Assembly: GCA_907165135.1 (NCBI GenBank)
Contig: OU015566.1
Span: 9,672,001-9,736,000, forward strand
Direction: 5' to 3'
Source of the DNA: Oikopleura dioica
Taxonomy: Eukaryota > Animalia > Chordata
DNA length: 64,000 bases
Below are positions 227 through 40,318 of the stretch, in pieces. Position 1 is the stretch's first letter. The number at the start of each line of letters is the position of its first letter. The notes beneath the pieces are model-generated. The model was not told the origin of the DNA and made no database searches. It was given only the letters and a program-made list of their open reading frames with translations. The position numbers were made by a program, and so were the translations under genes.

Positions 227-3200
227 TTACTAAATATGAGCAGTTATTTAAACGCAGTCATAATAAAACAGAATGGTTTAAATGGAAAATAATTGCTAAC
301 ACACCTGACTAAAAGGAGGATATTGTCCGTGTTGTTGCTGCGGAGGTGCTCCCATGCCTGGTGGGGCTCCTCCTTGTGGTGGTGCTCCGGGATATCCACC
401 TGAAAAGAAAGGATTATTATCGAATACAAATATAGGAGCAAGTTAAATTATCGTGATAAATTTAACTCACGGTGTGGTCGCATACCCCCTGGGTACTGAG
501 GAGGATACTGGCCATATTGAGGATAACCTCTAGGCGGGTATCCTTGGTATCCAGGATGTCCAGGAGGGTGTCCATAGCCAGGCGGCATTCCAGGTCGAGG
601 TGGATAACCACCTGAGCCGGGGTGTCCGTGTGGTGGGTAACCTTTCATTCGGGCTTTGACTGGGTCATTTTCTTATTTTTTCTAAAAGTTTTTCACTAAA
701 GCCGTGCCTTGCGGAGGATATCCAGGATGTCCACTTGGGTAGCCATAAGGGTAGCCTGGTTTCTGCGCCATGCCAGGGTGCATTCCTTGAGGCGCGTGAG
801 GGTTGTATCCTGCTGGTGGTGCACCTTGGGGACTTTGGCCAGGATGGGGTTGAGACTGCCCTTGCATTGCTGGCCCTCCTGGGCTTTGCATCATCGATGG
901 GTGTCCTTGACCTAAAAAGACATCTTAGCTAGATAAAGACTAATAAGGATCTACCCGGAGAAGACTGTTGAGGTGACTGATGCGGGATATTCGGCGACTG
1001 AGCATGTGGTGCTTGAGGCGTTTGCGGATTCACCGATGGGCTCGCATGTGTTGAATCTGGTCTGGGAGGAGGATTAGGCGTCGAAGGCTGTTTCTGGGGT
1101 GATATCTAATACTCGGAATATAAAAGAACTTAAACTGGCGCCAACTACGACCTGTTGTTGCGCCTGCGGTTGAGAGCTGTGTAGATGGTGAGGCTGGTTC
1201 ATGGCGTGTGGAGGGTAGCCTGGCGCCTGGCTACCTGGATACGGCTGGCTGGCTGGCCCACCAGGATAACCGGGGCCATAGCCTGGATGCTATAAAATGC
1301 TAAATAAACTTATAAAAATAACGATTTACCTGTGAGTAAGGAAATCTGTGTGCAGGATTCTGAGCGGCTTGAGGATTAGGTGCTCCAGGTTGCCCAGGCC
1401 CATTCCCATGAAAACCAGGATAACCGGGATGTGGCTGACTTTGTGGCGTAGCTGCTGGATTCTGTTGCGTTGGCATCGCACTGTTTTGAGCTGCAGATGG
1501 AGACTGTTGAATTGGTGTTTGTTGTTTGGGCGGAGGTTGTTGTTGCTGCTGTGGTTGTTGAGCTTGAGAAGACGCCGAAGGAGCGGGACTTTGAGCTGGC
1601 TGAGACTGCGCCTGTTCTTGTGGAGTTTTTGGAGGCTCTTCGGTAATCGACTGGGGAGGTTCGGTTTCGGAACTTGGCTTTGGTGAGACTCTGGCTTCGC
1701 TTTCGGAGTTGACCGCTTGAGGAGGGTTATTTCCAGGAGTTGGCGGATTATCTGGTTGATTTTCCGTAGGAGCGGGAGATTTTACAGCGGATTCAGTCGG
1801 AACGGGAGTTGAGACTGGAGGAATTTGTGTCTGTGATGGCTGATCATTTTCGGTTTCTTGTGTTGACGCAGGAGTTGCTGGCTTTGGTGGGTGACCGTTT
1901 GGAAGCCCGTTCGGTAGTCCTGGGTGCTGCTGTATGCCTGTATGAGCTTGTGGAATGGGTGGTTGGGCCATTCTCGGGCCCTCAGGTCTAATCTGAGACA
2001 GAGTGGCTATTTTGGACAAAAAATAGGGGTCTATCCATCCAAATTCCATCCAAAAAATTTCTAACCGGGTCTATCCATCCAAAATCCAATCCAATCCAAT
2101 TTTCGCCCAATTCCCAACTAAAATCCAATTCCAAGTTCTTCCGAAATTCCAACTTTTCCCAATTCCCAATATGCCCCGATTCCATTGGATTTCCAATATT
2201 TTCCAGCTAGCAAATTCAAAAAAAAACAAACAAACAATACTTATTCTTCAAAGTTTATTTCTGTAGATCCAAGGGCAATGTCTAGGATTGTGCTGGCAGC
2301 AAGTTTGTGGCGTCGAATAGATCGCATCAATGTCGTGAAACTGAAGGCTCGCTCCAGGCTTGAACTTGAGACGGAAGAGTGATGAAGCTAAGAAATGCTT
2401 TATTTTTGAACTCAAAAAAACCGAACCATTAATCCGATTCTGCTCAATCTTGGCAAGGTTTCAGCGTATCGCCGCCAGAACTCTCCAACAATATCATCTT
2501 CCGCAACCTTCTTCATTGCGCAATACTTCTTGTCTAATTTCAAATAAAGTAGATTAATGATGAAAATTACTTACGCGCTTCTATATCAGTATCATTTACT
2601 TCGTCGTACTGAGCAATCTCTTCTTCGATCTTGGAACGGATTTCTTTTGGCTTTCCTAGTCCGCGGCGGTGACTAAGTGGGCCAACAGCGTTATTTTGGC
2701 TGTCACATTGAACATTATTAACGCCAGCTTCAAGGAGCTGTAACAACTGTTCATCTGTCAGCTCGTCGTCTTCCATTGTTCGATCAACCTCTGTGATCCA
2801 GTTCTTCGCTTTTTCGAGCCAATCCTTGGTTCCGTCGACGAGTACTTTCTGAATTATTTTTTGGCATGAAGATAAATACATACCATTATTTTGGAGATGA
2901 AGGGGACTCGGGAATCTTTCATTTTGGCGACGACTGGATGAAAATTCATCGCTATCGATGTAGAGTCGGGTGCCAGGTAAATGCTTGCCAAGTCTTTGTT
3001 GGTAAAACGAAGGGGTACTTGACATGGGACATCGTTTCCATTCATATCAATCCGCTTTTTTGTAACCTGTTCCACCACACTGATGAGCACAGCCTTCGCA
3101 AATCTGGATTCCTCGGTCCGACTGATTGTGATTCGATTGACGCACTCAATCATTATTCGTTCGATTTGCTTGTAGTACGCTGATCCGCAGGCAAGCGAGT

Positions 3201-5924
3201 CAGACTCGAGAATATTGATACTGCGATGAATTTCGATAAGAAGAGGGTTGATTGATCGCGCAAACTGCAGATCTGGGACTGGACACTCAGCGAGAAGATG
3301 GCGTTGAGGGTGGTTGATAGAAAAGAGGTTGTTTAGGCTATCTTCGCTCAAAAGGAGACGCTGAACTCCATAGATTAATTTCCGGAAGCGCGTGGAGCCG
3401 GAAATTCGATCGATGGCCTTCCCTTTCTCCTTTCTGTTGAGGAATGCATCCGTCTTTTCTTCAACAAGTCGTTTGACTTGATCGTCTTCAAGAATTTCAG
3501 TACTCGCTTTTATTTTTGCATTATAAAACTCTTTTATAAGCAAGCGATTAGTCACTTCTTGAGAAATCAAAAACGCATTGATTGACTTGTATCCGACACC
3601 AGCCGGAAGATCACTCGCCGATACTGTAGCTTCACACTTGTCGATGAATTTTTCAAGTGATTCGTACTTCTTATCCTTCGGTCCACCTGGTCTGAGATTT
3701 TGTTCGCACGCTCTCTTAAGGTTGCAACACATTGAATGACTTCCGCAAATGCTACGGTTGATCGTAAAATGCTCGGGCACGGACTCTGCTGCCTGATCGC
3801 TCACAATGCAGACCAAGTTTTTCTCTATCGCATCGGTAAGGTTGTATTCTTCAAATATCTGCTTCAGTTTTTCTATGGTGTGATCCGCAGTTGAGTCCGG
3901 CATCGGAACATAACCGATCAAACAGTTCCAAAATCCGTTTTTGCAGCGAATATTGACCTCAACCCCGAGTATCTTCCAGAGCGTATTTTCTTTAGTTTTC
4001 ACGTATTTGTGGTCTTTAAAGGATATTAAATTGTTAATAAGACAAATTATTCAAAAATTTTTAAAGAAACTTTGAAATCCTTATCCTAGAGAAATTGACA
4101 GGCGGCCCTTTTTTGCCATTTCCGGAAGAATCTGTTGAAGGCGCTCCCGAATTTTCTTTGCCTCTTCTTTCATGTATATTTTGATGGCATCCTTCGAAAG
4201 GCAAAGTTGATTGATGAGCATCTGGCTAAAGGATACATTTTTGAGAAGGCAGCGCATCAGGGCCTTGACAGAGTCATGTGACCAAAACCGGAAGCTTGTT
4301 CCGGTATCGCGCATGACTTGCAGAACTTTCTTCTGGACATCAACTCTGTGGTCCTTGGTGTTATTCAGAAGCGCGAGTACTCTCTGCTCATCTGGTGCTT
4401 GCGCGTGGCGATCCACAATCGGTTCGAGAGTCTTTTTATAGACATCTGTATTTTGATCGTATGTATGGAATGGCTTAAGGTTTTTTAAGAATTTTTACAA
4501 AATGCAAATTTTACCTCTCCTCTGCATTTTTTGCACTTAGCTCCATCTATTCTTGCGCAGCGCAAGTAGCAAGTCGGAAATCCCTCGAAATAGTACTCTT
4601 CAAATTCAAGGTTGAGCTCTCGAATCTTGTCTTGTAGTTTTGTAGGGGTCCATTTCTTCCATTCACCAGTCGGTTGCTCACTTTTTTCATCAGCAGTAAT
4701 TTCCGCTTTCTTTCTATCAACCTCTTCTTTTCGTTTATCCTTGTCTTTTTCGTCACTCGCCACATAAATGCATCTCTTGGAACGCTTGGCAGGTGGACTC
4801 ATCCCTTCTGAAAAAAGGTTGACTAGTAAAAGAAAAGAAAATGCCATTTAAATCGCAGTAAAACTCTCTAATGATCAGTATTTATCCGTCTGAGAAAGGT
4901 AGACTGCGCGTGATGAGTGTAGGTTGAGAACAAACCTGATTGGTCGATCATTTTTTCGCAATTTTTTCTCGGATCCAATCTTGCCAACAACTGCCAATTC
5001 CCCAAGAAGATCCAATTTTCCAATGTCGCCAATCCCCAATTTCCCCCAATTACCCAATTTTACCCAATAAAATCCGATACCCTGGCCATCCAAATTCCAT
5101 CCAAACCTTATTGGATTGGATCCAATCCAATTCCAACTAACCCCCAAGTCCAAAATAGCCACCCTGATCTGAGAAGTCGGTTGAGGGGTTGGTGCTCCAG
5201 GCTGAGGCATGCCGTGTTGCTGAGAGTGCTGCTCAGTCGGCGCAGTTGCTCCTGGAGCGGTGGGATGTGCTGGTCCTCCAGCTGGACCGGGTGTCGGACC
5301 AAGTCCCATTCCAGAACCCTGTTTATCCGCAGCAGTAGCGAGATAGACGAGATTCTTGTGCAGCTTGTTTTGATATTGGACGCAATCTTGGACCATTCCT
5401 AAAAGAATTTCACGAGTTAGAAACCGCGTCTGTAATTACGCTAAAATAAAGGGAATTTTTGAAAATTGACGACATTTAGGCATAAATACGCCCGTTTGAC
5501 GTGACAAATTCCACCGAATGTTGTCTAGATTGTATGAATCAATTGAAATGGAATAAATTAAAGAAAGTGAATAGCGAATTCACAGTTGGGCTCACCCTTC
5601 GACTGGTAGTTGATTATACATTCGATCAAGTGCGTATTTTCGTCGAGAATAAATTGAATCTGTGAGCGGGACGGTGGAGCTGCATTTGGAGGCATTCCAT
5701 GACCATTATGACCGGCACCCGGTGGTGGTGGCACAGGGCCGCGCAAGTCGCCTCGAACCTGAATTCGTAATTTTTAATACGTTTTTAGATTGACAAGATT
5801 ATATTCAGCGTATCAATTACAGTAATCAACGACTAGAAAATTGTTGAGATTACGGTACCTTCCGCAAATTCGCAACTAATTTTGGCAAGTTTAGCGTTAT
5901 GGAAGAGTATTTTTGCTTATCCAT
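227..5924 (-). CDS. SS18: SS18/SYT-family (SSXT domain, QPGY-rich) BAF-complex subunit; multi-exon; one exon interrupted by a hAT element
   Basis: Spliced N-terminus QIQFILDENTHLIECIINYQSKG|MVQDCVQYQNKLHKNLVYLATAAD matches the SSXT motif. Long Q/P/G/Y-rich exons follow, with phase-compatible junctions (5859-5924, 5596-5758, 5163-5398, then 1992 downward). The first exon and terminal stop are hand-predicted. Confidence 0.88.
642..707 (-). other. Non-canonical GC-AG intron with end-pairing stem (SS18)
   Basis: caa g|GCAC-GGCTTT...AAAGCC-cgaatgAAAG|gt; phase 1 joins PPQ-G-YPP. Confidence 0.7.
2241..4802 (-). CDS. hAT-family transposase, about 6 exons, apparently intact
   Basis: N-terminal Cys/His BED-like finger, SISLD (D1, across a splice), CIVSDQA (D2), CGSH (CxxH), STRF, and a C-terminal FW..LP.LS / SSSLERAFS dimerization motif. 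Phase-compatible introns. Confidence 0.88.
4014..4085 (-). other. Non-canonical GA-AG intron with stem (inside hAT transposase)
   Basis: cta g|GAT-AAGGAT...ATCCTT-tAAAG|ac; splicing rebuilds the catalytic SISLD. Confidence 0.7.
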
Positions 5925-17700: not shown

Positions 17701-20700
17701 CTCACGCGTGAAATTAACCGACTTTTAAATAGCCAGAGTAGGCCTTCTCTCTGACTCGTGCTTGTCCTCAGAATATGCTAATTTTTCTTAATGGTTTGAA
17801 TTGATCACTTGGTTATTAACCCATTTTTCAGGAAGAAGTATGTAACGACACACCATGCAAAGATGGCGAGGACCCTCACGATATCATGGCATCCCTGCAA
17901 AACAAAGTCCTTAACTTTTTACGTTCCGACGCTGGCGGCAGAAATGTCCGACAATGGGAAACATGGGAAAGTTGGGGTCCATGTGGCACAAAATGTGGCC
18001 GAGCATTCCGAGAACGAACCCGGACTTGCCCAGAAGAAGACGCCTGTCCCGGAAGCGACTCACAGCGGGTCGCTTGTACTGCCATCTGGGGATGCAACAA
18101 TAACAATAGAATAAGCAAACTCAAAGAGCTCCAATCTCAATTTTCTCCTTGGACGTCGTGGCTTCCATGCTCGAAATCATGCGGAATCGGAACCGAAACG
18201 CGAACAAGAACATGCATTGCTGCGAGATGCAATGGATTCTTGGAGCAAACGCGAAATTGTAACTCACAACCTTGTCAAGGCCCTCAAGTCCATCTTAAAA
18301 CCGTCGCGGGAGAGTGGAGCACATGGAATGCCTGGAGCGAATGCTCTGTTTCCTGCAATGGCGGTAGCCACACTCGAACACGAAAATGCATAGGCGGTGA
18401 GTGCGTGGGAGAGTCGACCGAAGAATTGCCTTGTGGAGAAGAGCCGTGTGCTCGATGGAGCGAGTGGTCAAGTTGGACAGATTGCTCAAAAGACTGCGAT
18501 GGAGGATTTACTAAAAGAGAACGTCTGTGTTCAGGAGAAGGTAGCTGCGAAGGAACAGATGTAAGCGAGAAGTCATGCAATACTCACTCTTGTCCAGTGC
18601 TTGAAAATTGGTCGGAATGGTCTGAGTGCTCTCAGCTAGGGATTCTGAATAATCATATCTATAGTTTTGAATATTTCAATATTTTATGATTTAATATCAT
18701 TATATTTGATGATATATTGGTATTTTTTTAGCTAATATGGGATTATACTTAGATTAGATAATCGAATAAATTATAAATCCAACGCTCAGTCTTGTGGCTC
18801 TGGTGGAAGTTCATCGCGCAAAAGATCGTGTTCTTCCGGAGAAGAAGATGACTGCACTGGTAGTTTTTCGGAAACAAAGAATTGTAACCTCGGTCCATGC
18901 GCTCATTACTCGCCGTGGTCCGTTTGGTCTGAGTGCGACTCCCTTTGCGGTGGTGGAATCACGAAGCAGGCTCGAACGTGTGTCGGCATTGGCGCGTGTG
19001 AAGGACCTGATATAAAAGAGCAAAGTTGTAATGAAGATCCTTGCTTGGGCTGGGCCAGTTGGTCTAGTTGGACGAGTTGCTCGGAGCCATGCGGTGTGGA
19101 AGGAACAAGAGATAGGCAAAGAGAATGTGAAGGACAGGAGTTTAAATAACTACTTGTGTAGAGAGAATAATTATTTTTATTGTTTTTTACGTGTTTGGTC
19201 CATTTATTAAAAGCATGAAATAATTTTGTAAGAAATTGACCTAACTAGGTATAGCGTCAGCATATGGCGAGGATATATATTTCGAACTCAAATAAGGATT
19301 ACCGGAGCTCTGTAAAGGAGAATCATCGGAAAACGAAAGCTGCTTTGTCGGCACTTGTGCTGAATGGTCAGACTGGCTCGATTGGGGCTCATGTTCTTCA
19401 CTTTGCGACGGCGGTAAAAGAGAACGGTCTCGCATCTGCACTGGTATCGGGGAGTGCGAAGGAAGCGCAACCAACACTGACGACTGCAACATTGAACGCT
19501 GCGCAATTTGGTCAGAGTGGAGCGATTACGGACCTTGCTCAACTACGTGCGGCATCGGAGAACGAGTTCGGGAGCGTTCATGTGATGGAATCGGTAGCTG
19601 CTCTGGCAATGATACTCAAATCAGTGACTGCTCTTACGGCGAGTGTGCTGACTGGTCGGAATGGGCCGCTTGGACAGAATGTTCAAAATCATGTGGAGAT
19701 GGACTCAAGTCTCGATCGAGAGATTGTTTTGGTCTCGGAGATTGCAAAGGCAATAATCAGGATACAGAAGTGTGCAATATGGGACGATGTGCATTTTGGG
19801 CTGATTGGCAAGAGTGGGGACAATGTTCTCAAGAATGTGACATAGGAAAACGAGCAAGAATCAGATCATGTGACGGAATCGGCGAGTGCCATGGAGAAGC
19901 ATCCGAAAATGAAAACTGCAATACTGGTCCATGCGCATATTGGGACCATTGGGGCTCTTGGAGTGCTTGTAGTGCGTCTTGTGGAGACGGTCTTCGGCAA
20001 CGAAAGAGAGACTGCTTAGGCGTTGGAGAATGTGAAGGATCTACGTCTGACTTGGAGGCTTGTGACATTGGCGCGTGCGCAGATTGGGCGGAATGGAACA
20101 CGTGGGGAAGATGTTCAGCTTCCTGCGGTGGTGGACAAAGAGTGCGGGAAAGAAATTGTATTGGACTTGGAGAATGCAAGACTGGAGATCAACGACAACA
20201 AGGAATTTGCTCAATTCAGGAACGGTTTTGAAACGTTCGCATCTAAAACTACTATGAATTATTTAAACTATAAATTATTTCCATGAAGTACGTCAAATTG
20301 AAAGAGGTCAATTAATTTAAAATGTCTAGCCATAAGATTTATTTTCCCTCAAACCATCATGAAAGTCATGCGAAGTTTATGGGTTGTGGGCTGAATGGAG
20401 TGCTTGCAGCGCGTCATGTTCGACTCCGGACACCTTTGCCACACAGTCTCGCTTACGTCCATGTCTAGTGGAAGATAAGTGTCTTCCACAAGAACTTCTG
20501 GAATCGCAAAAGTGTCCAGGGAGTCCTCCTTGTCCCACCTGGTCGATTTGGTCTGACTGGTCTCAGTGCTCAGAAACATGCGGAATCGGACAGCGCAGCA
20601 AGGCCCGGGAGTGTCTCTATGGCGACGATTGTGAAGGAGATATCGCTGAGTCGGAATCGTGCTCGGACGGAGACTGTCCTACTTGGACAGATTGGCTAGA

Positions 20701-23700
20701 ATGGAGTGCCTGCTCAGAAACTTGCGGCGAAGGCTCGAGATTCAGGAATAGAATCTGTCAATTTGGACACGAAGAAGACTGTGACGGAAACTCTGTAGGA
20801 TCAGAATCTTGCAACGTCAGAGAATGTCCTATATGGTCAGACTGGGAAACATGGACAAAATGCTCAAAATCTTGTGGTAAGGGACAAAAGCTTCGGCAGC
20901 GAGTTTGCATAAATGGAGAAGCCGGAGAAGATTGCCTCGGATCAGGTTTCGAAGAACTTGAGTGCAGTACTGAAAAATGTCCTTTCTGGGTTGACTGGAT
21001 GCCGTGGTCTGAATGTTCGAGCTCTTGCGGAACAGGAATCAAAGCGAGAAAACGCCGCTGCCGTGGTGGTCGCCCGGAAGAGTGTGGAGGAAATAATGAC
21101 GAAGAGATTCCATGTAACACGAGAAAATGCCCTGAATGGACGACATGGGAGGAGTGGAATAGTTGCAGTGCATCATGTGGTGGTGGAAATCGACAACGAA
21201 GGAGAAAATGTCAGTTTGGAGCTGACTGTGAAGGTTCTGCCATGGAAACTGAAGCTTGTAATCCAGATCAGTGCCCATATTTCGAAGAATGGTCAGAATG
21301 GACGAAATGTTCTGCTTCCTGCGGGTCAGGGAACAGGTCTCGCTCGAGAGATTGTGTGGGAGAACTTTGCAGCGGAGAAAAAGAACAAACAGAAAAATGC
21401 ATGGAAACCAAATGCCCATCTTGGTCGACTTGGCTTGATTGGTCGAACTGCGGTGCTAGCTGCGGAAATTCTACTCAAACAAGAGAGCGTAACTGCTTGT
21501 ATTCAACCTCTTCGAAATCATGCGAAGGAACATCATCCGAGTCTCAAGACTGCATTATCGCTCCTTGTCCTTATTGGGCCAAATGGGCAGAATGGACCCC
21601 TTGCACCGTTTCCTGCGGAGGCGGAAGGCGTCGTCAATCCCGCGGATGCATGCACGGTCCTGGATGTGAAGGAGGTTCTAGTAACGCTTTCAAAATTGAG
21701 CTTTGCAACACAGACTCTTGTTCGAACTGGTCAGAATGGTCAGAGTTTGATTCTTGCTCTGCTTCATGTGGTGGTGGAATTCAGAAACGCTACCGATCCT
21801 GCGAGGGTGGCGATGATTGTGAGGGAAAATCAATGGAGACCAACTCTTGCAACCAAGTTCCTTGTCCGAAATGGTCTGAATATTCTGATTGGTCTCCTTG
21901 CTCGTCTTCTTGCGGCGAAGGAATAAAGTCTAAGAAAAGATCGTGTGAAAACGGCGATGATTGTGAAGGCGAAAGCACAATAAGCGCCGACTGTAATCTT
22001 GGCCCGTGTGGGCAATGGTCGGAGTATGGAAGTTTTGGTGAGTGCTCGAAATCATGCGGCGGAGGGCTGAAATCAAAGACAAGAACTTGCATCGGCGGTG
22101 ATGACTGCGAAGGAAAAAGTGAAATAACAGAAAAATGCAATAGAAACGCTTGCCCGTTTTGGTCAGACTGGAGCGAACCGAGTCCCTGTAGTGCTACATG
22201 TGGTGGCGGAGAGAGCACGCGTAAACGATGGTGCAAAAATGGACTAACAAAGGCTGACTGCAACGGTCCGAGCGAAGAAATCACAAATTGTGGGACAAAC
22301 GCCTGTCCAACCTGGGGAGATTGGTCAGCGCCTGGTGAGTGCTCAGTCACTTGTGGTGGAGGATTTGCTTCACAGGATTGTTTGGCCAAATTGAAATTTT
22401 AGTTATAATAATGACTTTCACTTAATAAAAATATACTTTCCTTAGAAATGTTTTTCAAACATAATCGAGTCACGTCAATGTAATGGCGGTATCGCCGGAG
22501 TAGACTGCATCGGCGAATTGTCAAACGTCGTTAATTGCGCGGATATACCGTGTCCGACATGGTCTAATTGGGGAGACTTTGGCTCATGTTCATCTTCATG
22601 CGGCGGCGGTATGCGCTCAAGATCACGTACCTGTGAAAACGAAACATCCACTGGCAAGTGCACGACTGGAGAAGCAACAGAGGAGAGCGACTGCAATACA
22701 AGTCCGTGTCCTAGAGTAGGAGAATGGTCGGATTGGTCAGAATGCTCGGCAACTTGTGGCGGTGGCGAGCAAAATCGAGCTCGGTCATGCATGTTCGGTA
22801 GTAGCTGTACTGGAGACAAGTTAGAAACGCGAAAATGCAACAAAAACCGCTGCCCAGAATGGTCTGAATGGGCTGGTTTTGGAATTTGCTCTGCGACATG
22901 CGGCGGCGGAAAAACTTTCCGCTCACGAAGTTGCCAGTTTGGAGATACTTGTCCTGGAAAGAGTTCTGAGACTGTATCTTGCGCAGACGATCCTTGCCCT
23001 TCCTGGAGCGAGTGGTCTGACTATTCTGAGTGTTCGGTGTCATGTGGTGCGGGCGAACAGCAAAGATCAAGATCATGTCAGAATGGATACTCCTGTATGG
23101 GATCAGCAAACGATTCTAGAGAGTGCAAGCGAGGTCCATGTCCTGAATGGGAAGCTTGGACAAAGTTCTCAGCCTGTTCAAAATCATGTGGCGGTGGAAT
23201 CTCGACAAGAACCAGAAAATGCGCAGACGGGGTGGAAGGAGTCGATTGCTTAGGAGAAGCAGAAGAGCAAGTCGAATGCAATACAGAGCCATGTGCTGAA
23301 TGGACAAAATGGACAGAGTACTCCTCCTGTAGTGTCTCATGCGGTGGCGGCATCAAAACATCCACGCGAAAGTGTAGTGGTGGCGATTCCTGCGAAGGGA
23401 GAAGTGAGCGCAGCCTGCCTTGTGGAAGCCAGGATTGCCCAACTTGGTCGAGCTGGACTACATATGGAGAATGCTCCGTCACATGCGGCAAAGGAGAGAA
23501 ATCAAGAGGGAGAACTTGCAAAAACGGGGATGATTGCCCTGGTCCGAAAATTGAAACGGCTTTTTGTGAGCTTGCTCAATGCGGGCCAGTTTATACCGAG
23601 TGGTCTGCCTGGACAAAGCTCGGTGATATTTCATTTTATAAACTTTTTGAGCTTATTTGTCTTTTTGTAAATTTCTCACCGCATAACAGTGTTCTCAAAC

Positions 23701-24950
23701 ATGTGATTCTGGTTTCAAATCTCGTTCAAGGGCATGCAAAAGTGGAAAGTGTAAGGGTCTACTTTCGGAGAAGGTTGAATGCTCTGAAAGTGTCTGTTCT
23801 CGGTGGGATGATTGGGAAGCTTGGAGCACGTGTACGGCCACTTGTGGCGGTGGAATGCATTACAGACAGCGTCAATGTATCGGCGGAGGTTGCCAAGGAA
23901 TGCCCATGGCCTACGAGCCATGTAATACAGACGCGTGTGATGCTGGTTGCGCTGGACCAAGGTTCTTTATTCGTGAAATTGAAATCAAAATTGCTTAGTG
24001 AGCGTTTTCTTATAATCAAAATTTTAGGGATGTTCTTTTTGTCGCTCATTACACCACCTACATGGGGTCGACCTTTGGTGACATTTCCTCCTTCTTCGAA
24101 AACATCATCAGCACAATCAACGTGGAACCATCATCATCATCCATTCGATTCGCATTTTCTTTTTATAATCACGCGTATGTCGAATTCTTTGCCTTTGACT
24201 GGCTCAAGAGCATTGACGAGTATCGATGGGCCTTTTCGTCATTTCCACCGGCAACCGGAAACTCTAACTATATCGGAAAGGCTCTCAAGGGAGCAACTGA
24301 CACGATGACTCCAGCCTTCGAAAAGGGCCGAAGACTGGATACTGTAGGGACCGTTGTGCTTTTGACCAACGCTGTCAGGTAGGCGATCTCTTTTGGTTCA
24401 AAAAATTAACCCTTACCAGTAACGATGAAGTCGATGATATGGCCTCCCAACTCAAGGAAAAAGTCGATCGGGTCATCGTGGTTGGCTTAGGATACGCTTA
24501 CGGTCGCGATGAGCTGACCGGAATCGCATCAATCCGATCGAAGAAAATCTCTATACAGCAGAAGAATCCTCCGACCTCGCAGGGCTTGTAGAAACCATCG
24601 CGGAAGAAATCTGTGCAACGGAAATCTCAGACCAAAGTTCTTGTAGAAAAGCAGGATGCGAGCAAGAATGCCGATCAGAGTATTCTGGGGCAACTTGTTG
24701 GTGCTCAAAGGGCATTTTGAATGAGGATGGAAGATCCTGTCTAGGTTTGATTTTTACCCAGAAATTGTTTCTTGATATTTATACTCTCTTCGTAGCTGGA
24801 TGCATCGATGCTGATGCAAACACGATTCGAACTCCTGGGGAAACTTGGGAAGTCGAGGGAATGTTTGGCATGACCTGTACCTGTCTAGAATCCGGCGATA
24901 CGGACTGCACCTTCGGCGCCTACGATTTCTACAACTACGGTGGTTGGTAA
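14714..24950 (+). CDS. Large secreted modular protein: signal peptide, Thr/Ser mucin-like region, Ly6/uPAR (LU) domain, ~37 TSP type-1 repeats, VWA, EGF-like, short Cys-rich C-terminus
   Basis: WSxWSxCSxxCGGG..R.R.C repeats counted by hand (~37). LU Cys pattern LVCYAC...CCCETNECN after splicing. VWA exon 24028-24378 and EGF CRKAGCEQECR..CWCSKG..DGRSC. The link of the 14714-15487 exons to the LU exon is inferred from phase-1 compatibility. A 1-nt frameshift lies near 24531. Confidence 0.8.
15680..16374. mobile_element. hAT-type MITE (695 bp) with GAGTG/CACTC subterminal repeats
   Basis: TIR CAGGGTTCCAATTTTG at both ends. Perfect 8-bp TSD ATCTAAAT (15672-15679, 16375-16382). Confidence 0.93.
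16706..17054 (+). other. Non-canonical GA-AG intron with short stem (LU domain)
   Basis: aag|GAAC-GGTG(T)...(G)CACC-cttgAAAG|gct; restores LU Cys spacing. Confidence 0.6.
17303..17404 (+). other. Non-canonical GG-AG intron with stem
   Basis: gag|GGAC-GGGTT...AACCC-gccAAAG|aca; yields the LU end CCCETNECN. Confidence 0.75.
18636..18789 (+). other. Apparent CT-AG intron with stem
   Basis: cag|CTAG-GGATT...AATCC-aacgctCAG|tct; yields the TSP1 motif CSQSCG. Confidence 0.6.
19133..19296 (+). other. Non-canonical GA-AG intron with stem
   Basis: gaa g|GACAG-GAGTTTAAATA...TATTTCGAACTC-aaatAAG|ga; the only phase that keeps the TSP1 frame. Confidence 0.7.
20220..20365 (+). other. Non-canonical GA-AG intron with stem
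   Basis: cag|GAAC-GGTTTTGA...TCAAACC-atcatgAAAG|tca. Confidence 0.75.
22376..22469 (+). other. Non-canonical GA-AG intron with stem
   Basis: cag|GATT-GTTTG...CAAAC-ataatcGAG|tca; the outer GATT/AATC also pair. Yields CGGGFASQSRQC. Confidence 0.7.
23619..23689 (+). other. Apparent CT-AG intron with stem
   Basis: aag|CT-CGGTGA...TCACCG-cataaCAG|tgt; yields WSAWTKCSQTC. Confidence 0.6.
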
Positions 24951-37936: not shown

Positions 37937-40318
37937 ATGCGCTTCTATAAAAGCGCTTCGCTGGAATCTCAAATTCAATTTATCATAAAAATGATGGGAA
38001 AAGATTTTTTGGAGGAAAAGCGCAATGCATTTCCGCGATTTTTCTTCCTCGATGACGGTGATCTTTCTGAGCTTTTTGAGAGCAAAGATGATTTCGATGC
38101 AGTTCAGCCTTTTTTCGAGAAGCTTTTCGATGGCGTTTCTTCAGTAGAGCTCGACGCAGAAAAGAAGAATATTGTTGCGATGAAGTCGAAGCTCAACGAA
38201 CGACTTGAGCTTGCTGAACTAGTCTCTATCGCTCAGTCGCAAGAAAGATGGCTGTCGAAGTTCGAGGAGTCCACGAAAAAATCTGTTTCCAACGCGATTC
38301 TTCATGCTTACGAGACTTATGAGAAAAGCGCTGATAGAATCGAGTGGATCAAAAGCAATCCTGCCCAAGCATCAATTGTTGCGACGCATTTGAAGCATAC
38401 AGAAGCAGTTGAAAAAGCCATCATGGCTTCTGGAAATCTTAGCACTGTGTTGGAAGATATTGAAAAGCAATTAGAAGCACTGACAAAGGAGGTTTTGAAA
38501 GATTTGGACCAGCGGGAAAGGTGCTTGATGGAAAACATGATTATTAACCAGGTTTGGCTGATGTAGAAAATAAGGCAAGTAAGTCAAATTCAGGTTCATG
38601 ACCGGGAAATACTGAAACAAATCATCGCTGGGACGAAAACTTGGGAATCAACTCTTCGTTTTTACCTCGAAAATGGTCAGGTCATTGTCAAAATGAATGA
38701 TTCTCAAAACGAGTATGGAAACGAATACCTCGGAAACAAGTCTCAGCTTGTCATTACTCCTCTGACAGACATTGCATACAGTTCGATTCTGACCGCAAAG
38801 GAGAACTTTCTTTGTTCTGCTCCTCAAGGACCGGCTGGAACGGGAAAAACGGAAACGACTAAAGATCTCGCTAGAGCGCTGGGAAAGAATTGCGTCGTTA
38901 TCAATTCTTCCGACCAATTGACGGAGAAGGAGACAGCGGAAATTTTCAAGGGATGTCTTACAAGTGGATCATGGGTCTGTTTCGATGAATTTAATCGAAT
39001 CACCGCGGATGTTTTGGAAAAAATTGGAGAACAACTTCGAGCTATTCAAAAGCATAGGGAGGAGAAGAAGGGGACGATTGAGGACTTCTGCGGTTCGAAA
39101 AATCTAAAGGAATGGGTAAATTATTTATACGCTTTAGGATCAATCAATTAATGATTTTTATGAAAAAAAAATAATCGTTCCTTTCGCCAATTTACCCACC
39201 ACACAAGCTCCGCGAAGAAAGCTTTGTCGCGATCACAATGAATCCAGGCTACGATGGACGAACTGAACTACCGGAAAATCTGAAGACATTGTTCCAATCA
39301 ATTTCAATGACAGTTCCTGACCGAGGAGTGATTTCGGAAATAAAACTGTATTCGGCCGGAATTCAAACAGCAAATCAACTCGGAGATAAAGTCGCTTTGT
39401 TCCACAAGCTGTGCGAGGAGAAGCTAAGCAAACAGGTTTCTTTTCTTCTCGGTGTTTGATCATAACAGTTTTTGAAGGCGCATTATGATTTTGGACTTCG
39501 AGCTATTCTGAAATCTGTATCAAGCGCAAAAGCTCTCAAACTACTCTTTCCCGCCGAAAAAGAAATCGATCTTGTGTGCGATGCTCTCCGAACTCAACAT
39601 TTCGGAAAGCTAACTGAAGAAGATATCTCGGTTTTCGAGCAAGTCATGGAAGAAGTTTTTCCTGGCTACCAATTGTTGAAGGAAAACAACGAGGAATTCA
39701 AACGTATCGCCACTGAAATAATCAAGTCTCTTGAGTTGAAAGTATGGAAATTCATTAATTCAACATTATATATTTTTTTCCAGGCAACTGAAAAATTCCT
39801 CACTCGTCTGACTCTCGCCTTCAAGATCATGAGAAATCGTCATGGCTTGCTCATTCTGGGACAAGCTCGCACGGGAAAGTCAACGTTTTTGGAAGTCCTT
39901 CAAAAAACTCTTTCCAAGCTAAATGATGATGATCAAACACAAGATGGCGAACCTGTTCTGGCGGTTGATACCGAAACCATTTGCATCGAGAAGCTGAGTT
40001 TAGATGAACTCTATGGATCATTCGATTCAACAACGAAAAAATGGAGGGATGGCAAAATCACCAAGGTTTTCCGAAAGTTCGCTTCGGCAGCTGACAATCG
40101 CCAAAAATGGATCATCTTCAGCGGTCGAATTGATCCCGTTTGGGTAGAGCAACTAAACTCTGTTCTCGACGATAACAAAAAAGCTCTGCCTTGAGAATGG
40201 AGAAATCATTCAAGCAAGCAAGAACATGCGCTTCATTTTCGAAACCAGCGATTGCAACAAAGCGACACCTGCATTCATCTCCAGATCTGGCGTAATTCTT
40301 CTCAGCGAAAAATTTTAA
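37937..40318 (+). CDS. Truncated dynein heavy-chain-like protein (linker end + AAA1 + AAA2 only)
   Basis: LEEKRNAFPRFFFL, GPAGTGKTET, CFDEFNRI, MNPGYDGRTELPENLK, HYDFGLR, GQARTGKS, WIIFSGRIDPVWVEQLNSVLDDNKK, then LCLENGE..ISRSG and a stop at 40316-40318 (needs a 1-nt correction in the A6 run at 40177-40182). Confidence 0.85.
39110..39207 (+). other. Non-canonical GA-AG intron with 9-bp perfect stem (dynein-like gene)
   Basis: aag|GAAT-GGGTAAATT...AATTTACCC-accacacAAG|ctc; joins to LREESFVAITMNPGY. Confidence 0.8.

Follow-up and report, generated by a model that had tools for sequence, protein, structure and literature searches.

Can a DNA transposon that has landed in a coding exon leave the transcript as an intron, so that the insertion is an intron gain caught in progress? 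The question is raised by the gene for SS18 in the larvacean Oikopleura dioica, which in the 64-kb stretch of contig OU015566.1 analysed here (64,000 nucleotides in all, hereafter the window) is interrupted by a transposon of the hAT superfamily. We find that the insertion is recent and polymorphic and that an in-frame GT-AG route out of the transcript can be read from the two ends of the element; competing signals inside the element make chimeric or truncated transcripts at least as likely on paper. The reading that we favour, with a rough probability of 0.55, is that the filled allele is a recent segregating hypomorph or null giving mostly aberrant transcripts, and not yet an established intron. 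Coordinates of all features are collected in Table 1.

By its domain content the host gene is an SS18 orthologue on the minus strand. Pfam SSXT (PF05030) matches at 5561-5746 (E 1.8e-10) and again at 5175-5396 (E 1.4e-9), the SSXT/SNH domain being split across two exons and followed by downstream open reading frames (ORFs) rich in Pro, Gln, Gly and Tyr. A young, apparently autonomous hAT has recently been inserted, by cut and paste, into the large Pro/Gln-rich coding exon of this gene, approximately after codon 139 (counted from an inferred start codon) and just past the SSXT domain. The earlier note on this DNA, made from the letters alone, had described an exonic insertion with a perfect target-site duplication (TSD), and this description holds: the two 8-bp TSD copies (ATCTGAGA, 1991-1998 and 5167-5174), of the length expected for hAT elements, are identical, and removal of the element with one of them restores ...PQPTSQIRPEGPRM..., so that 1998 joined to 5175 gives an uninterrupted minus-strand ORF of about 300 codons (...APTPQPTSQIRPEGPRMAQ... 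/ ...GAPTPQPTSQIRPEGPRMAQPP...).

The terminal inverted repeats (TIRs) are 19 nt long and match at 18 positions, with a mismatch at position 4 followed by 15 perfect positions. They start CAGAGTGGC... and CAGGGTGGC..., which makes them CAG-initiated, in keeping with the short (C/T)AG termini of hAT elements. The 19-mer TIR pattern occurs at two places only in the window and had no match in 100 shuffles; the rest of the window holds nothing similar to the element ends and no second copy of the element, and an Rfam search of the whole window returned no match. The subterminal regions (5000-5183 and 2056-2239) consist of degenerate repeats of the CCAATTCC/GGATGGA type.

The insertion is a segregating allele, since filled and empty sites are both present in public DNA of the same lineage. 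The read evidence comes from contigs and reads of the DNA runs X25 and X29, the marine plankton metatranscriptome X1 and the raw RNA run X5. The stretch is near-identical in X1 and in DNA runs of one species, and many other runs of the same species share no words with it; O. dioica is reported to comprise deeply divergent cryptic lineages (PMC8008620). Contig 13 of X25 (5140-5432) spans the filled right junction, and the left-flank contig of the same run stops exactly at 1998, as expected where filled and empty sequences branch. The earlier note had called for a search for the empty site in other individuals, and a contig of X29 supplies it: in this contig 1998 is followed directly by AGTCGGTTGAGGGG, the letters of window 5175-5188. 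The filled junction in X25 and the exact empty site in X29 together establish that the insertion is real and polymorphic.

An intron gain in progress requires an insertion that is both recent and polymorphic, and the SS18 site is of this kind. Besides the filled and empty contigs, the coding differences between this copy and the assembled majority are synonymous only: about seven positions differ, including two synonymous coding changes and a 6-nt intron deletion. The missing hexamer, TTTAAT, is present in all assembled DNA contigs of other copies, and its loss here leaves a GT-AG intron of 35 nt instead of 41. By this comparison the element appears young and its transposase reading frame apparently functional. 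Read depth over the element is 5-7x that of the flanks and rises to 55-165x over the terminal 180 nt (two DNA runs); this implies a few long copies of the family and numerous short derivatives (miniature inverted-repeat transposable elements, MITEs) elsewhere in the genome.

A metagenome scan with the 19-nt TIR was rejected as a source of further copies. Three contigs carry CAGAGTGGCTATTTTGGAC exactly (L001:3013-3031, L002:10612-10630 and L003:2539-2557), which is about chance level; they are unrelated, with GC contents of 35-52%, and show no further similarity. These contigs may reflect a conserved hAT end. A metagenome scan for the empty or the spliced junction pattern gave 0 matches.

The identification of the element as a hAT, of a rare and divergent lineage, is well supported, by a profile match to the Hermes transposase, a hAT domain in a relative, a hAT-type C-terminal motif, the Atlas look-alikes, the 8-bp TSD and the CAG-initiated TIRs. 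The earlier note had made the same assignment. When a profile built from the transposase and its relatives was compared with the PDB, it matched the Hermes transposase with an E-value of 2.9e-10, and the alignment pairs both catalytic Asp residues (TID-LW with LD-HK, and VTDRGAN with VSDQAAE) as well as CSSH with CGSH. This profile alignment gives the protein an RNase-H-like aspartate-aspartate-glutamate (DDE) core homologous to that of Hermes and Ac, complete with the CxxH motif; the third acidic residue would be the one in the SSSSLERAFS motif, outside the Hermes alignment. Hermes is a housefly hAT (PDB 2bw3, 6dww, 4d1q and 8edg), and the match covers the N-terminal part of its catalytic domain, only about 230 residues at an E-value of about 1e-10.

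An exhaustive search of 1.84 billion cluster representatives yielded only 16 relatives. One of them, P0006, is 40% identical over 313 residues (model residues 471-773, across introns 3-5) and bears Pfam Dimer_Tnp_hAT (PF05699) with an E-value of 5.6e-10; a second, P0001, is colinear with our model across the GA-AG junction described below (AFDHKH versus SLDHKY). Look-alikes of the transposase in the Atlas were all DUF659, ZBED1 RNase-like or hAT clusters. Pfam searches of the element's separate ORF and exon pieces gave no hAT match, PF05699 included, and on exons 1 and 2 no match to a BED-type zinc finger, where a Cys/His-rich stretch (CYLRC...CKKC...H...H) is nonetheless visible. A word-indexed protein search with the 382-residue ORF found nothing, there was no exact record of the 249-residue read-through ORF, and a single-sequence AlphaFold model was unusable (predicted local distance difference test score, pLDDT, 37).

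As a side observation, P0001, the closest relative (40% identity), lies on the 2,537-nt contig L004 of Logan SRR29245574, which has three consecutive ORFs of 119, 501 and 64 residues. The intron is missing from the GA-AG position of this contig, which represents either an mRNA or a genomic copy, poor in introns, in another organism.

The earlier note had called the hAT intact. No single ORF spans the transposase, so the word applies only under a six-exon model; once spliced accordingly, the minus-strand frame is open for 777 codons with no stop. Both the ORF reading and this model place the transposase on the strand of SS18, as had been claimed. The model has five predicted introns, four of them GT-AG (41, 35, 41 and 39 nt) and one a 72-nt GA-AG intron. 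This unusual intron has RNA support from contig 5 of X1, in which 4015 is joined to 4088 (the register is ambiguous by 2 nt); X1 contigs over three of the other predicted introns, all GT-AG, are unspliced.

We turn to the proposal that the whole element can be removed as a 3,170-nt intron. On the gene's strand the exon would end ...CAG ATC AGG/ at 5163 (slashes mark splice boundaries), followed by GTGGCT (5162-5157), and the candidate acceptor ccactctgtctcAG ends at 1993, the exon resuming with ATT AGA CCT at 1992. Joining 5163 to 1992 gives the predicted junction ...CAGATCAGG/ATTAGACC... and the predicted product ...TSQIR-IR-PEG..., a net addition of 6 nt or Ile-Arg. Donor and acceptor are both where the earlier note had put them, and recomputation reproduced the interval that leaves 6 nt in frame. 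Thus one splice site comes from the element (GT at TIR positions 5-6) and the other from the TSD (AG), with the frame kept, which is the arrangement of introners (see below). Two extra residues in this low-complexity linker should be harmless.

How exceptional is such a route? Seven GTs and eight AGs near the element ends make 56 pairs, of which 20 are in frame and stop-free, and neither subterminal region is closed by a stop in the host frame. By a rough estimate, an AG within an 8-nt TSD together with the right frame would arise by chance about once in eight insertions. A second donor, at 5141, looks at least as good as GTGGCT. Exact restoration of the empty-site mRNA, by removal of 3,176 nt, was also considered and rejected: nine registers were checked by hand and none had GN-AG ends (N, any base), the best being AT..AG and GA..CA.

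The TIRs were also said to form a 15-bp perfect stem ending 10 nt before the AG. The 15 perfect positions are there; in gene-strand RNA, however, the single TIR mismatch becomes a G.U pair, so that the stem is a duplex of 19 bp, with an energy of about -51 kcal/mol when adjoining pairs are counted. The 3' junction lies 6 nt beyond its end, and the proposed donor GU falls within it. This duplex could juxtapose the splice sites, or it could mask the donor. Its geometry differs from that of the genome's "hairpin introns", to which it had been likened, in that here the donor sits inside the stem.

The element brings signals of its own that would compete with this route. Splicing of the TIR donor to the strong acceptor ttttttcAG, which ends at 4808, would yield ...IR-KG-stop, a stop after two residues. 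The AATAAA at 2259, likely a poly(A) signal to judge from its setting, precedes the proposed acceptor by 240 nt on the gene strand. In the order of transcription, a pre-mRNA from the filled allele would meet the TIR-borne donors at 5162 and 5141 first, then the very good acceptor at 4808, then the transposase's five short introns and the AATAAA, and would reach the TSD-borne acceptor at 1993 only beyond that signal. Because this internal acceptor, these introns and the AATAAA are in the same sense as SS18 and precede the acceptor at 1993, we expect the filled allele to yield mostly chimeric or truncated transcripts, in which the SSXT domain runs into an early stop; in-frame removal of 3,170 nt, adding Ile-Arg, would be a minor to partial product at best.

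Three points weigh against a mainly disrupted allele. First, the host donors and acceptors in the window are highly degenerate (GTCGTA, GTAGAT, GTTCGG, GCACGG, GATAAG), with introns of 35-70 nt and occasional GC-AG and GA-AG ends; because of this degeneracy, GTGGCT is not obviously a weak donor. Second, the right-junction contig of X25 has no break at the TSD, as might be seen if that individual lacked the empty allele and tolerated the insertion, although the left-flank contig of the run does end there, at 1998. Third, the predominance of aberrant transcripts is something we infer, and the RNA contigs end short of the insertion: the X1 contig in which SS18 intron 5595-5399 is spliced out goes no further than 5297, leaving about 120 nt to the site. 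The raw RNA run X5 contributed five reads, aligned at 90-95%, which points to another, divergent lineage, and the downstream SS18 exon, used as a protein query, matched nothing, so that no ORF with QIRPEG or QIRIRPEG was recovered.

Taking these together, we consider a hypomorph or null more likely than an efficiently spliced newborn intron. Of the proposal that the allele is a removable intron, the in-frame route survives: at the level of sequence it is real, and it follows published introner logic. The suggestion that the allele may be functional fares less well, since the 4808 acceptor, the five introns and the AATAAA would make chimeric or truncated transcripts at least as probable.

The strongest alternative is that 5162-1993 is efficiently spliced as a GT-AG intron, perhaps with help from the TIR duplex, and that carriers make a functional SS18 with Ile-Arg added to a low-complexity linker. 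The exonic AGG/ context is good, the acceptor is pyrimidine-rich (ctctgtctcAG), both element ends are stop-free in the host frame, and the degeneracy of the organism's own splice sites and the possible (if ambiguous) lack of an empty allele in X25 speak for it. There are also precedents, in maize Ds elements spliced from exons and in introners that use a TSD site, as these appear in parts of PMC3443670, PMC3260210 and PMC11282704. Yet no 5163/1992 junction occurs in the X1 contigs, of which that for SS18 ends at 5297, or among the divergent-lineage X5 reads, and the donor would be buried in a 19-bp stem. Some 3.2 kb is also very long for a genome of 65-70 Mb in which the median intron is 49 bp and 11-12% of introns are non-GT/AG (about 88% canonical) (PMC8008620), and the interval spans six good exons. 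The same-sense transposase gene places the 4808 acceptor, five introns and a poly(A) signal before the proposed acceptor, and chance puts about one third of the GT/AG pairs in the vicinity in frame. We therefore regard efficient splicing as possible but rather unlikely.

Transposons spliced from exons are already known; what is unusual here is that the candidate is autonomous and bears a gene. In maize, Ds1 is reportedly spliced from the pre-mRNA both in Adh1-Fm335 (Dennis and colleagues, in 1988) and in wx (Wessler, in 1991), and a study of sh2 by Giroux and colleagues in 1994 is said to have described the "de novo synthesis of an intron by Ds". Exonic maize Ds insertions that behave as introns are entries in the reference lists of PMC3260210 and PMC3443670. 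Maize Ac/Ds shares with the SS18 insertion its membership of the hAT superfamily, an 8-bp TSD and an exonic site, and as in the SS18 candidate the Ds donor is in or near the element terminus, the acceptor in the terminus or flank, and the product off by a few codons. The two differ in that splicing of Ds was proven by cDNA, whereas the SS18 case is known from sequence. Moreover, Ds is short and non-autonomous, whereas the SS18 copy is a 3.2-kb autonomous element in an animal host, with a same-sense gene, introns and a poly(A) signal.

A second comparison is with introners, introns that derive from DNA transposons and occur in Micromonas, Aureococcus and dinoflagellates, among others (Huff et al. 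2016; Gozashti et al. 2022, PMC9860276; reviewed in PMC11282704). In their mechanism, that of Huff et al. 2016 as described in PMC11282704, the element contributes one splice site and the TSD the other. The SS18 hAT resembles them in its TIR-borne GT and TSD-borne AG, in having TIRs and TSD lie on the borders between intron and exon and in belonging to a young multi-copy family. Introners, in contrast, are short, non-autonomous elements that form introns in many genes, with splicing shown at hundreds of sites, whereas this 3,168-bp copy encodes a transposase and its splicing is predicted. In addition, the AG at the SS18 site is a property of this particular target and, as far as tested, not a target preference of the family. 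The text of Gozashti et al. 2022 (PMC9860276) makes no mention of Oikopleura.

The earlier note had suggested that TIR elements may be a source of stem-bearing introns. The general idea of an origin of stem-bearing or non-canonical introns from TIR elements has already been published for another larvacean, Fritillaria borealis (PMC11282704), whose MITE-derived non-canonical introns have both TIRs and TSDs (Henriet et al. 2019, as given in PMC11282704 and PMC13326754). According to the same sources most of them have AG/AC or AG/AT ends, and they are short, fixed and shown to be U2-spliced (PMC11282704, PMC13326754). The larvacean host, the TIRs and TSDs and the idea of a spliceosome that neutralises exonic transposons are common to both cases; the SS18 candidate differs in being GT-AG, 3.2 kb long and polymorphic. 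Oikopleura itself is named, in a part of PMC3443670, among species with indirect evidence of intron gain by transposon insertion, and we found no paper in the literature searched on hAT elements in O. dioica exons.

A bolder version of the introner comparison would see introners active in a chordate, namely this hAT family together with its many short derivatives. Splicing from SS18 mRNA would then extend even to the autonomous 3.2-kb copy, by means of the GT at TIR position 5 (available in both TIRs and so in either orientation) and the AG of the target duplication, with the TIR duplex juxtaposing the sites; SS18 would hold an intron at the polymorphic stage, and the family would be a source of Oikopleura's fast intron turnover. 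We put this forward as a speculation that we doubt.

A further alternative is partial rescue, in which a mixture of cryptic sites (such as donor 5141 or 5063; acceptor 2071, 1993 or 1981) would give in-frame isoforms with 2-30 residues extra or missing. Imprecise removal at multiple sites has been described for Ds1 and Tc1 insertions. The 20 stop-free in-frame pairs enumerated above provide the raw material, and GGG/GTTAGT at 5141 is nearer to a standard donor than GTGGCT; these isoforms would face the same competing internal signals, and their route too is one traced on the DNA sequence, and we judge such an outcome improbable. Finally, repeat mis-assembly could in principle have put this multi-copy element (depth 5-7x the flank, ends 55-165x) into an SS18 exon, an explanation that the earlier note thought unlikely given the perfect TSD and that we reject as next to impossible, in view of that 8-bp TSD, the exact ORF restoration, the left-flank contig ending exactly at the TSD and, above all, the independent X25 short-read contig across the right junction (5140-5432).

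Some observations concern SS18 and its neighbours beyond the insertion. A 54-nt GC-AG intron that would keep the frame of SS18 is predicted, on ORF continuity only, at 654-707 on the minus strand (CAAG/GCACGG...GTCAAAG/CC). An ENA marine metagenome scaffold (L006:440-1520) carries a related larvacean SS18, 66% identical, whose homologous exon is broken about 12 nt upstream of the equivalent insertion point. The interrupting element is a distinct one, of 844 bp with 19/20 TIRs (TAGGGACATTCCTAACTCCA); it has no matching TSD and no SS18 sequence beyond it. From the repeat the scaffold probably passes into a different locus; it may record a second, independent transposon hit in the same SS18 exon. 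Elsewhere in the window, long plus-strand ORFs at 17886-24305 and 39472-40191, with as many as 12 thrombospondin type-1 repeats in one ORF and with an AAA fragment of a dynein heavy chain, are ordinary animal genes, and they confirm that the genome is that of a metazoan.

Table 1. Features of SS18, the inserted hAT element and the candidate splice and poly(A) signals (window positions; slashes mark splice boundaries)
Feature	Position	Strand	Details
SS18 exon, first half of SSXT domain	5596..5758	minus	Pfam, RNA contig
SS18 GT-AG intron, 197 nt	5399..5595	minus	spliced in plankton metatranscriptome X1, contig 7
SS18 exon part upstream of insertion	5175..5398	minus	second half of SSXT/SNH and Pro-rich linker
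Right TSD copy, ATCTGAGA	5167..5174		
Whole hAT element, 3,168 bp	1999..5166	transposase gene on minus	from TIR, TSD and ORF reading
Right TIR	5148..5166		reverse complement CAGGGTGGCTATTTTGGAC; GT at 5162-5161 on gene strand is the proposed donor
Hypothetical GT-AG intron, 3,170 nt	1993..5162	minus	AGG/GTGGCT ... tctcAG/ATT; predicted from the letters
Second phase-0 donor candidate, GGG/GTTAGT	5136..5141	minus	with acceptor 1993 would add 9 residues
Transposase exon 1	4515..4802	minus	ATG at 4802; acceptor ttttttcAG/ ends at 4808
Transposase intron, 41-nt GT-AG, predicted	4474..4514	minus	retained in one RNA contig
Transposase exon 2	4086..4473	minus	
Transposase intron, 72-nt GA-AG	4014..4085	minus	splits first catalytic Asp codon (G/AC)
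Transposase exon 3	2884..4013	minus	catalytic core: LSISL-D-HK, IVSDQAAE, SICGSHSMCCNL (CxxH)
Transposase intron, 35-nt GT-AG	2849..2883	minus	lacks 6 nt (TTTAAT after 2856)
Transposase exon 4	2575..2848	minus	
Transposase exon 5	2427..2533	minus	FWRRYAETLPRLSRIGL, first half of hAT C-terminal region
Transposase exon 6	2241..2387	minus	SSSSLERAFS...R..L hAT C-terminal motif; stop TAA 2243-2241
AATAAA	2254..2259	minus	overlaps last transposase codons, then T/GT-rich run; same sense as SS18
Left TIR, CAGAGTGGCTATTTTGGAC	1999..2017		3' end of element on gene strand
Left TSD copy, ATCTGAGA	1991..1998		gene-strand reading TCTCAGAT; source of proposed acceptor AG (1994-1993)
SS18 exon part downstream of insertion	1330..1990	minus	Pro/Gln-rich; in frame with 5175-5398 after element removal

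What the SS18 insertion means depends on the transcripts of its carriers. If they do not splice the element out, as we think more probable, this would be an ordinary recent loss-of-function insertion, and mainly evidence of a currently active autonomous hAT in the lineage. If they do, it would be an animal example of a transposon-born intron that can be followed in living populations. O. dioica can be cultured and has a generation time of 4 days. The origin of Oikopleura's unusually high intron turnover would then be directly testable.

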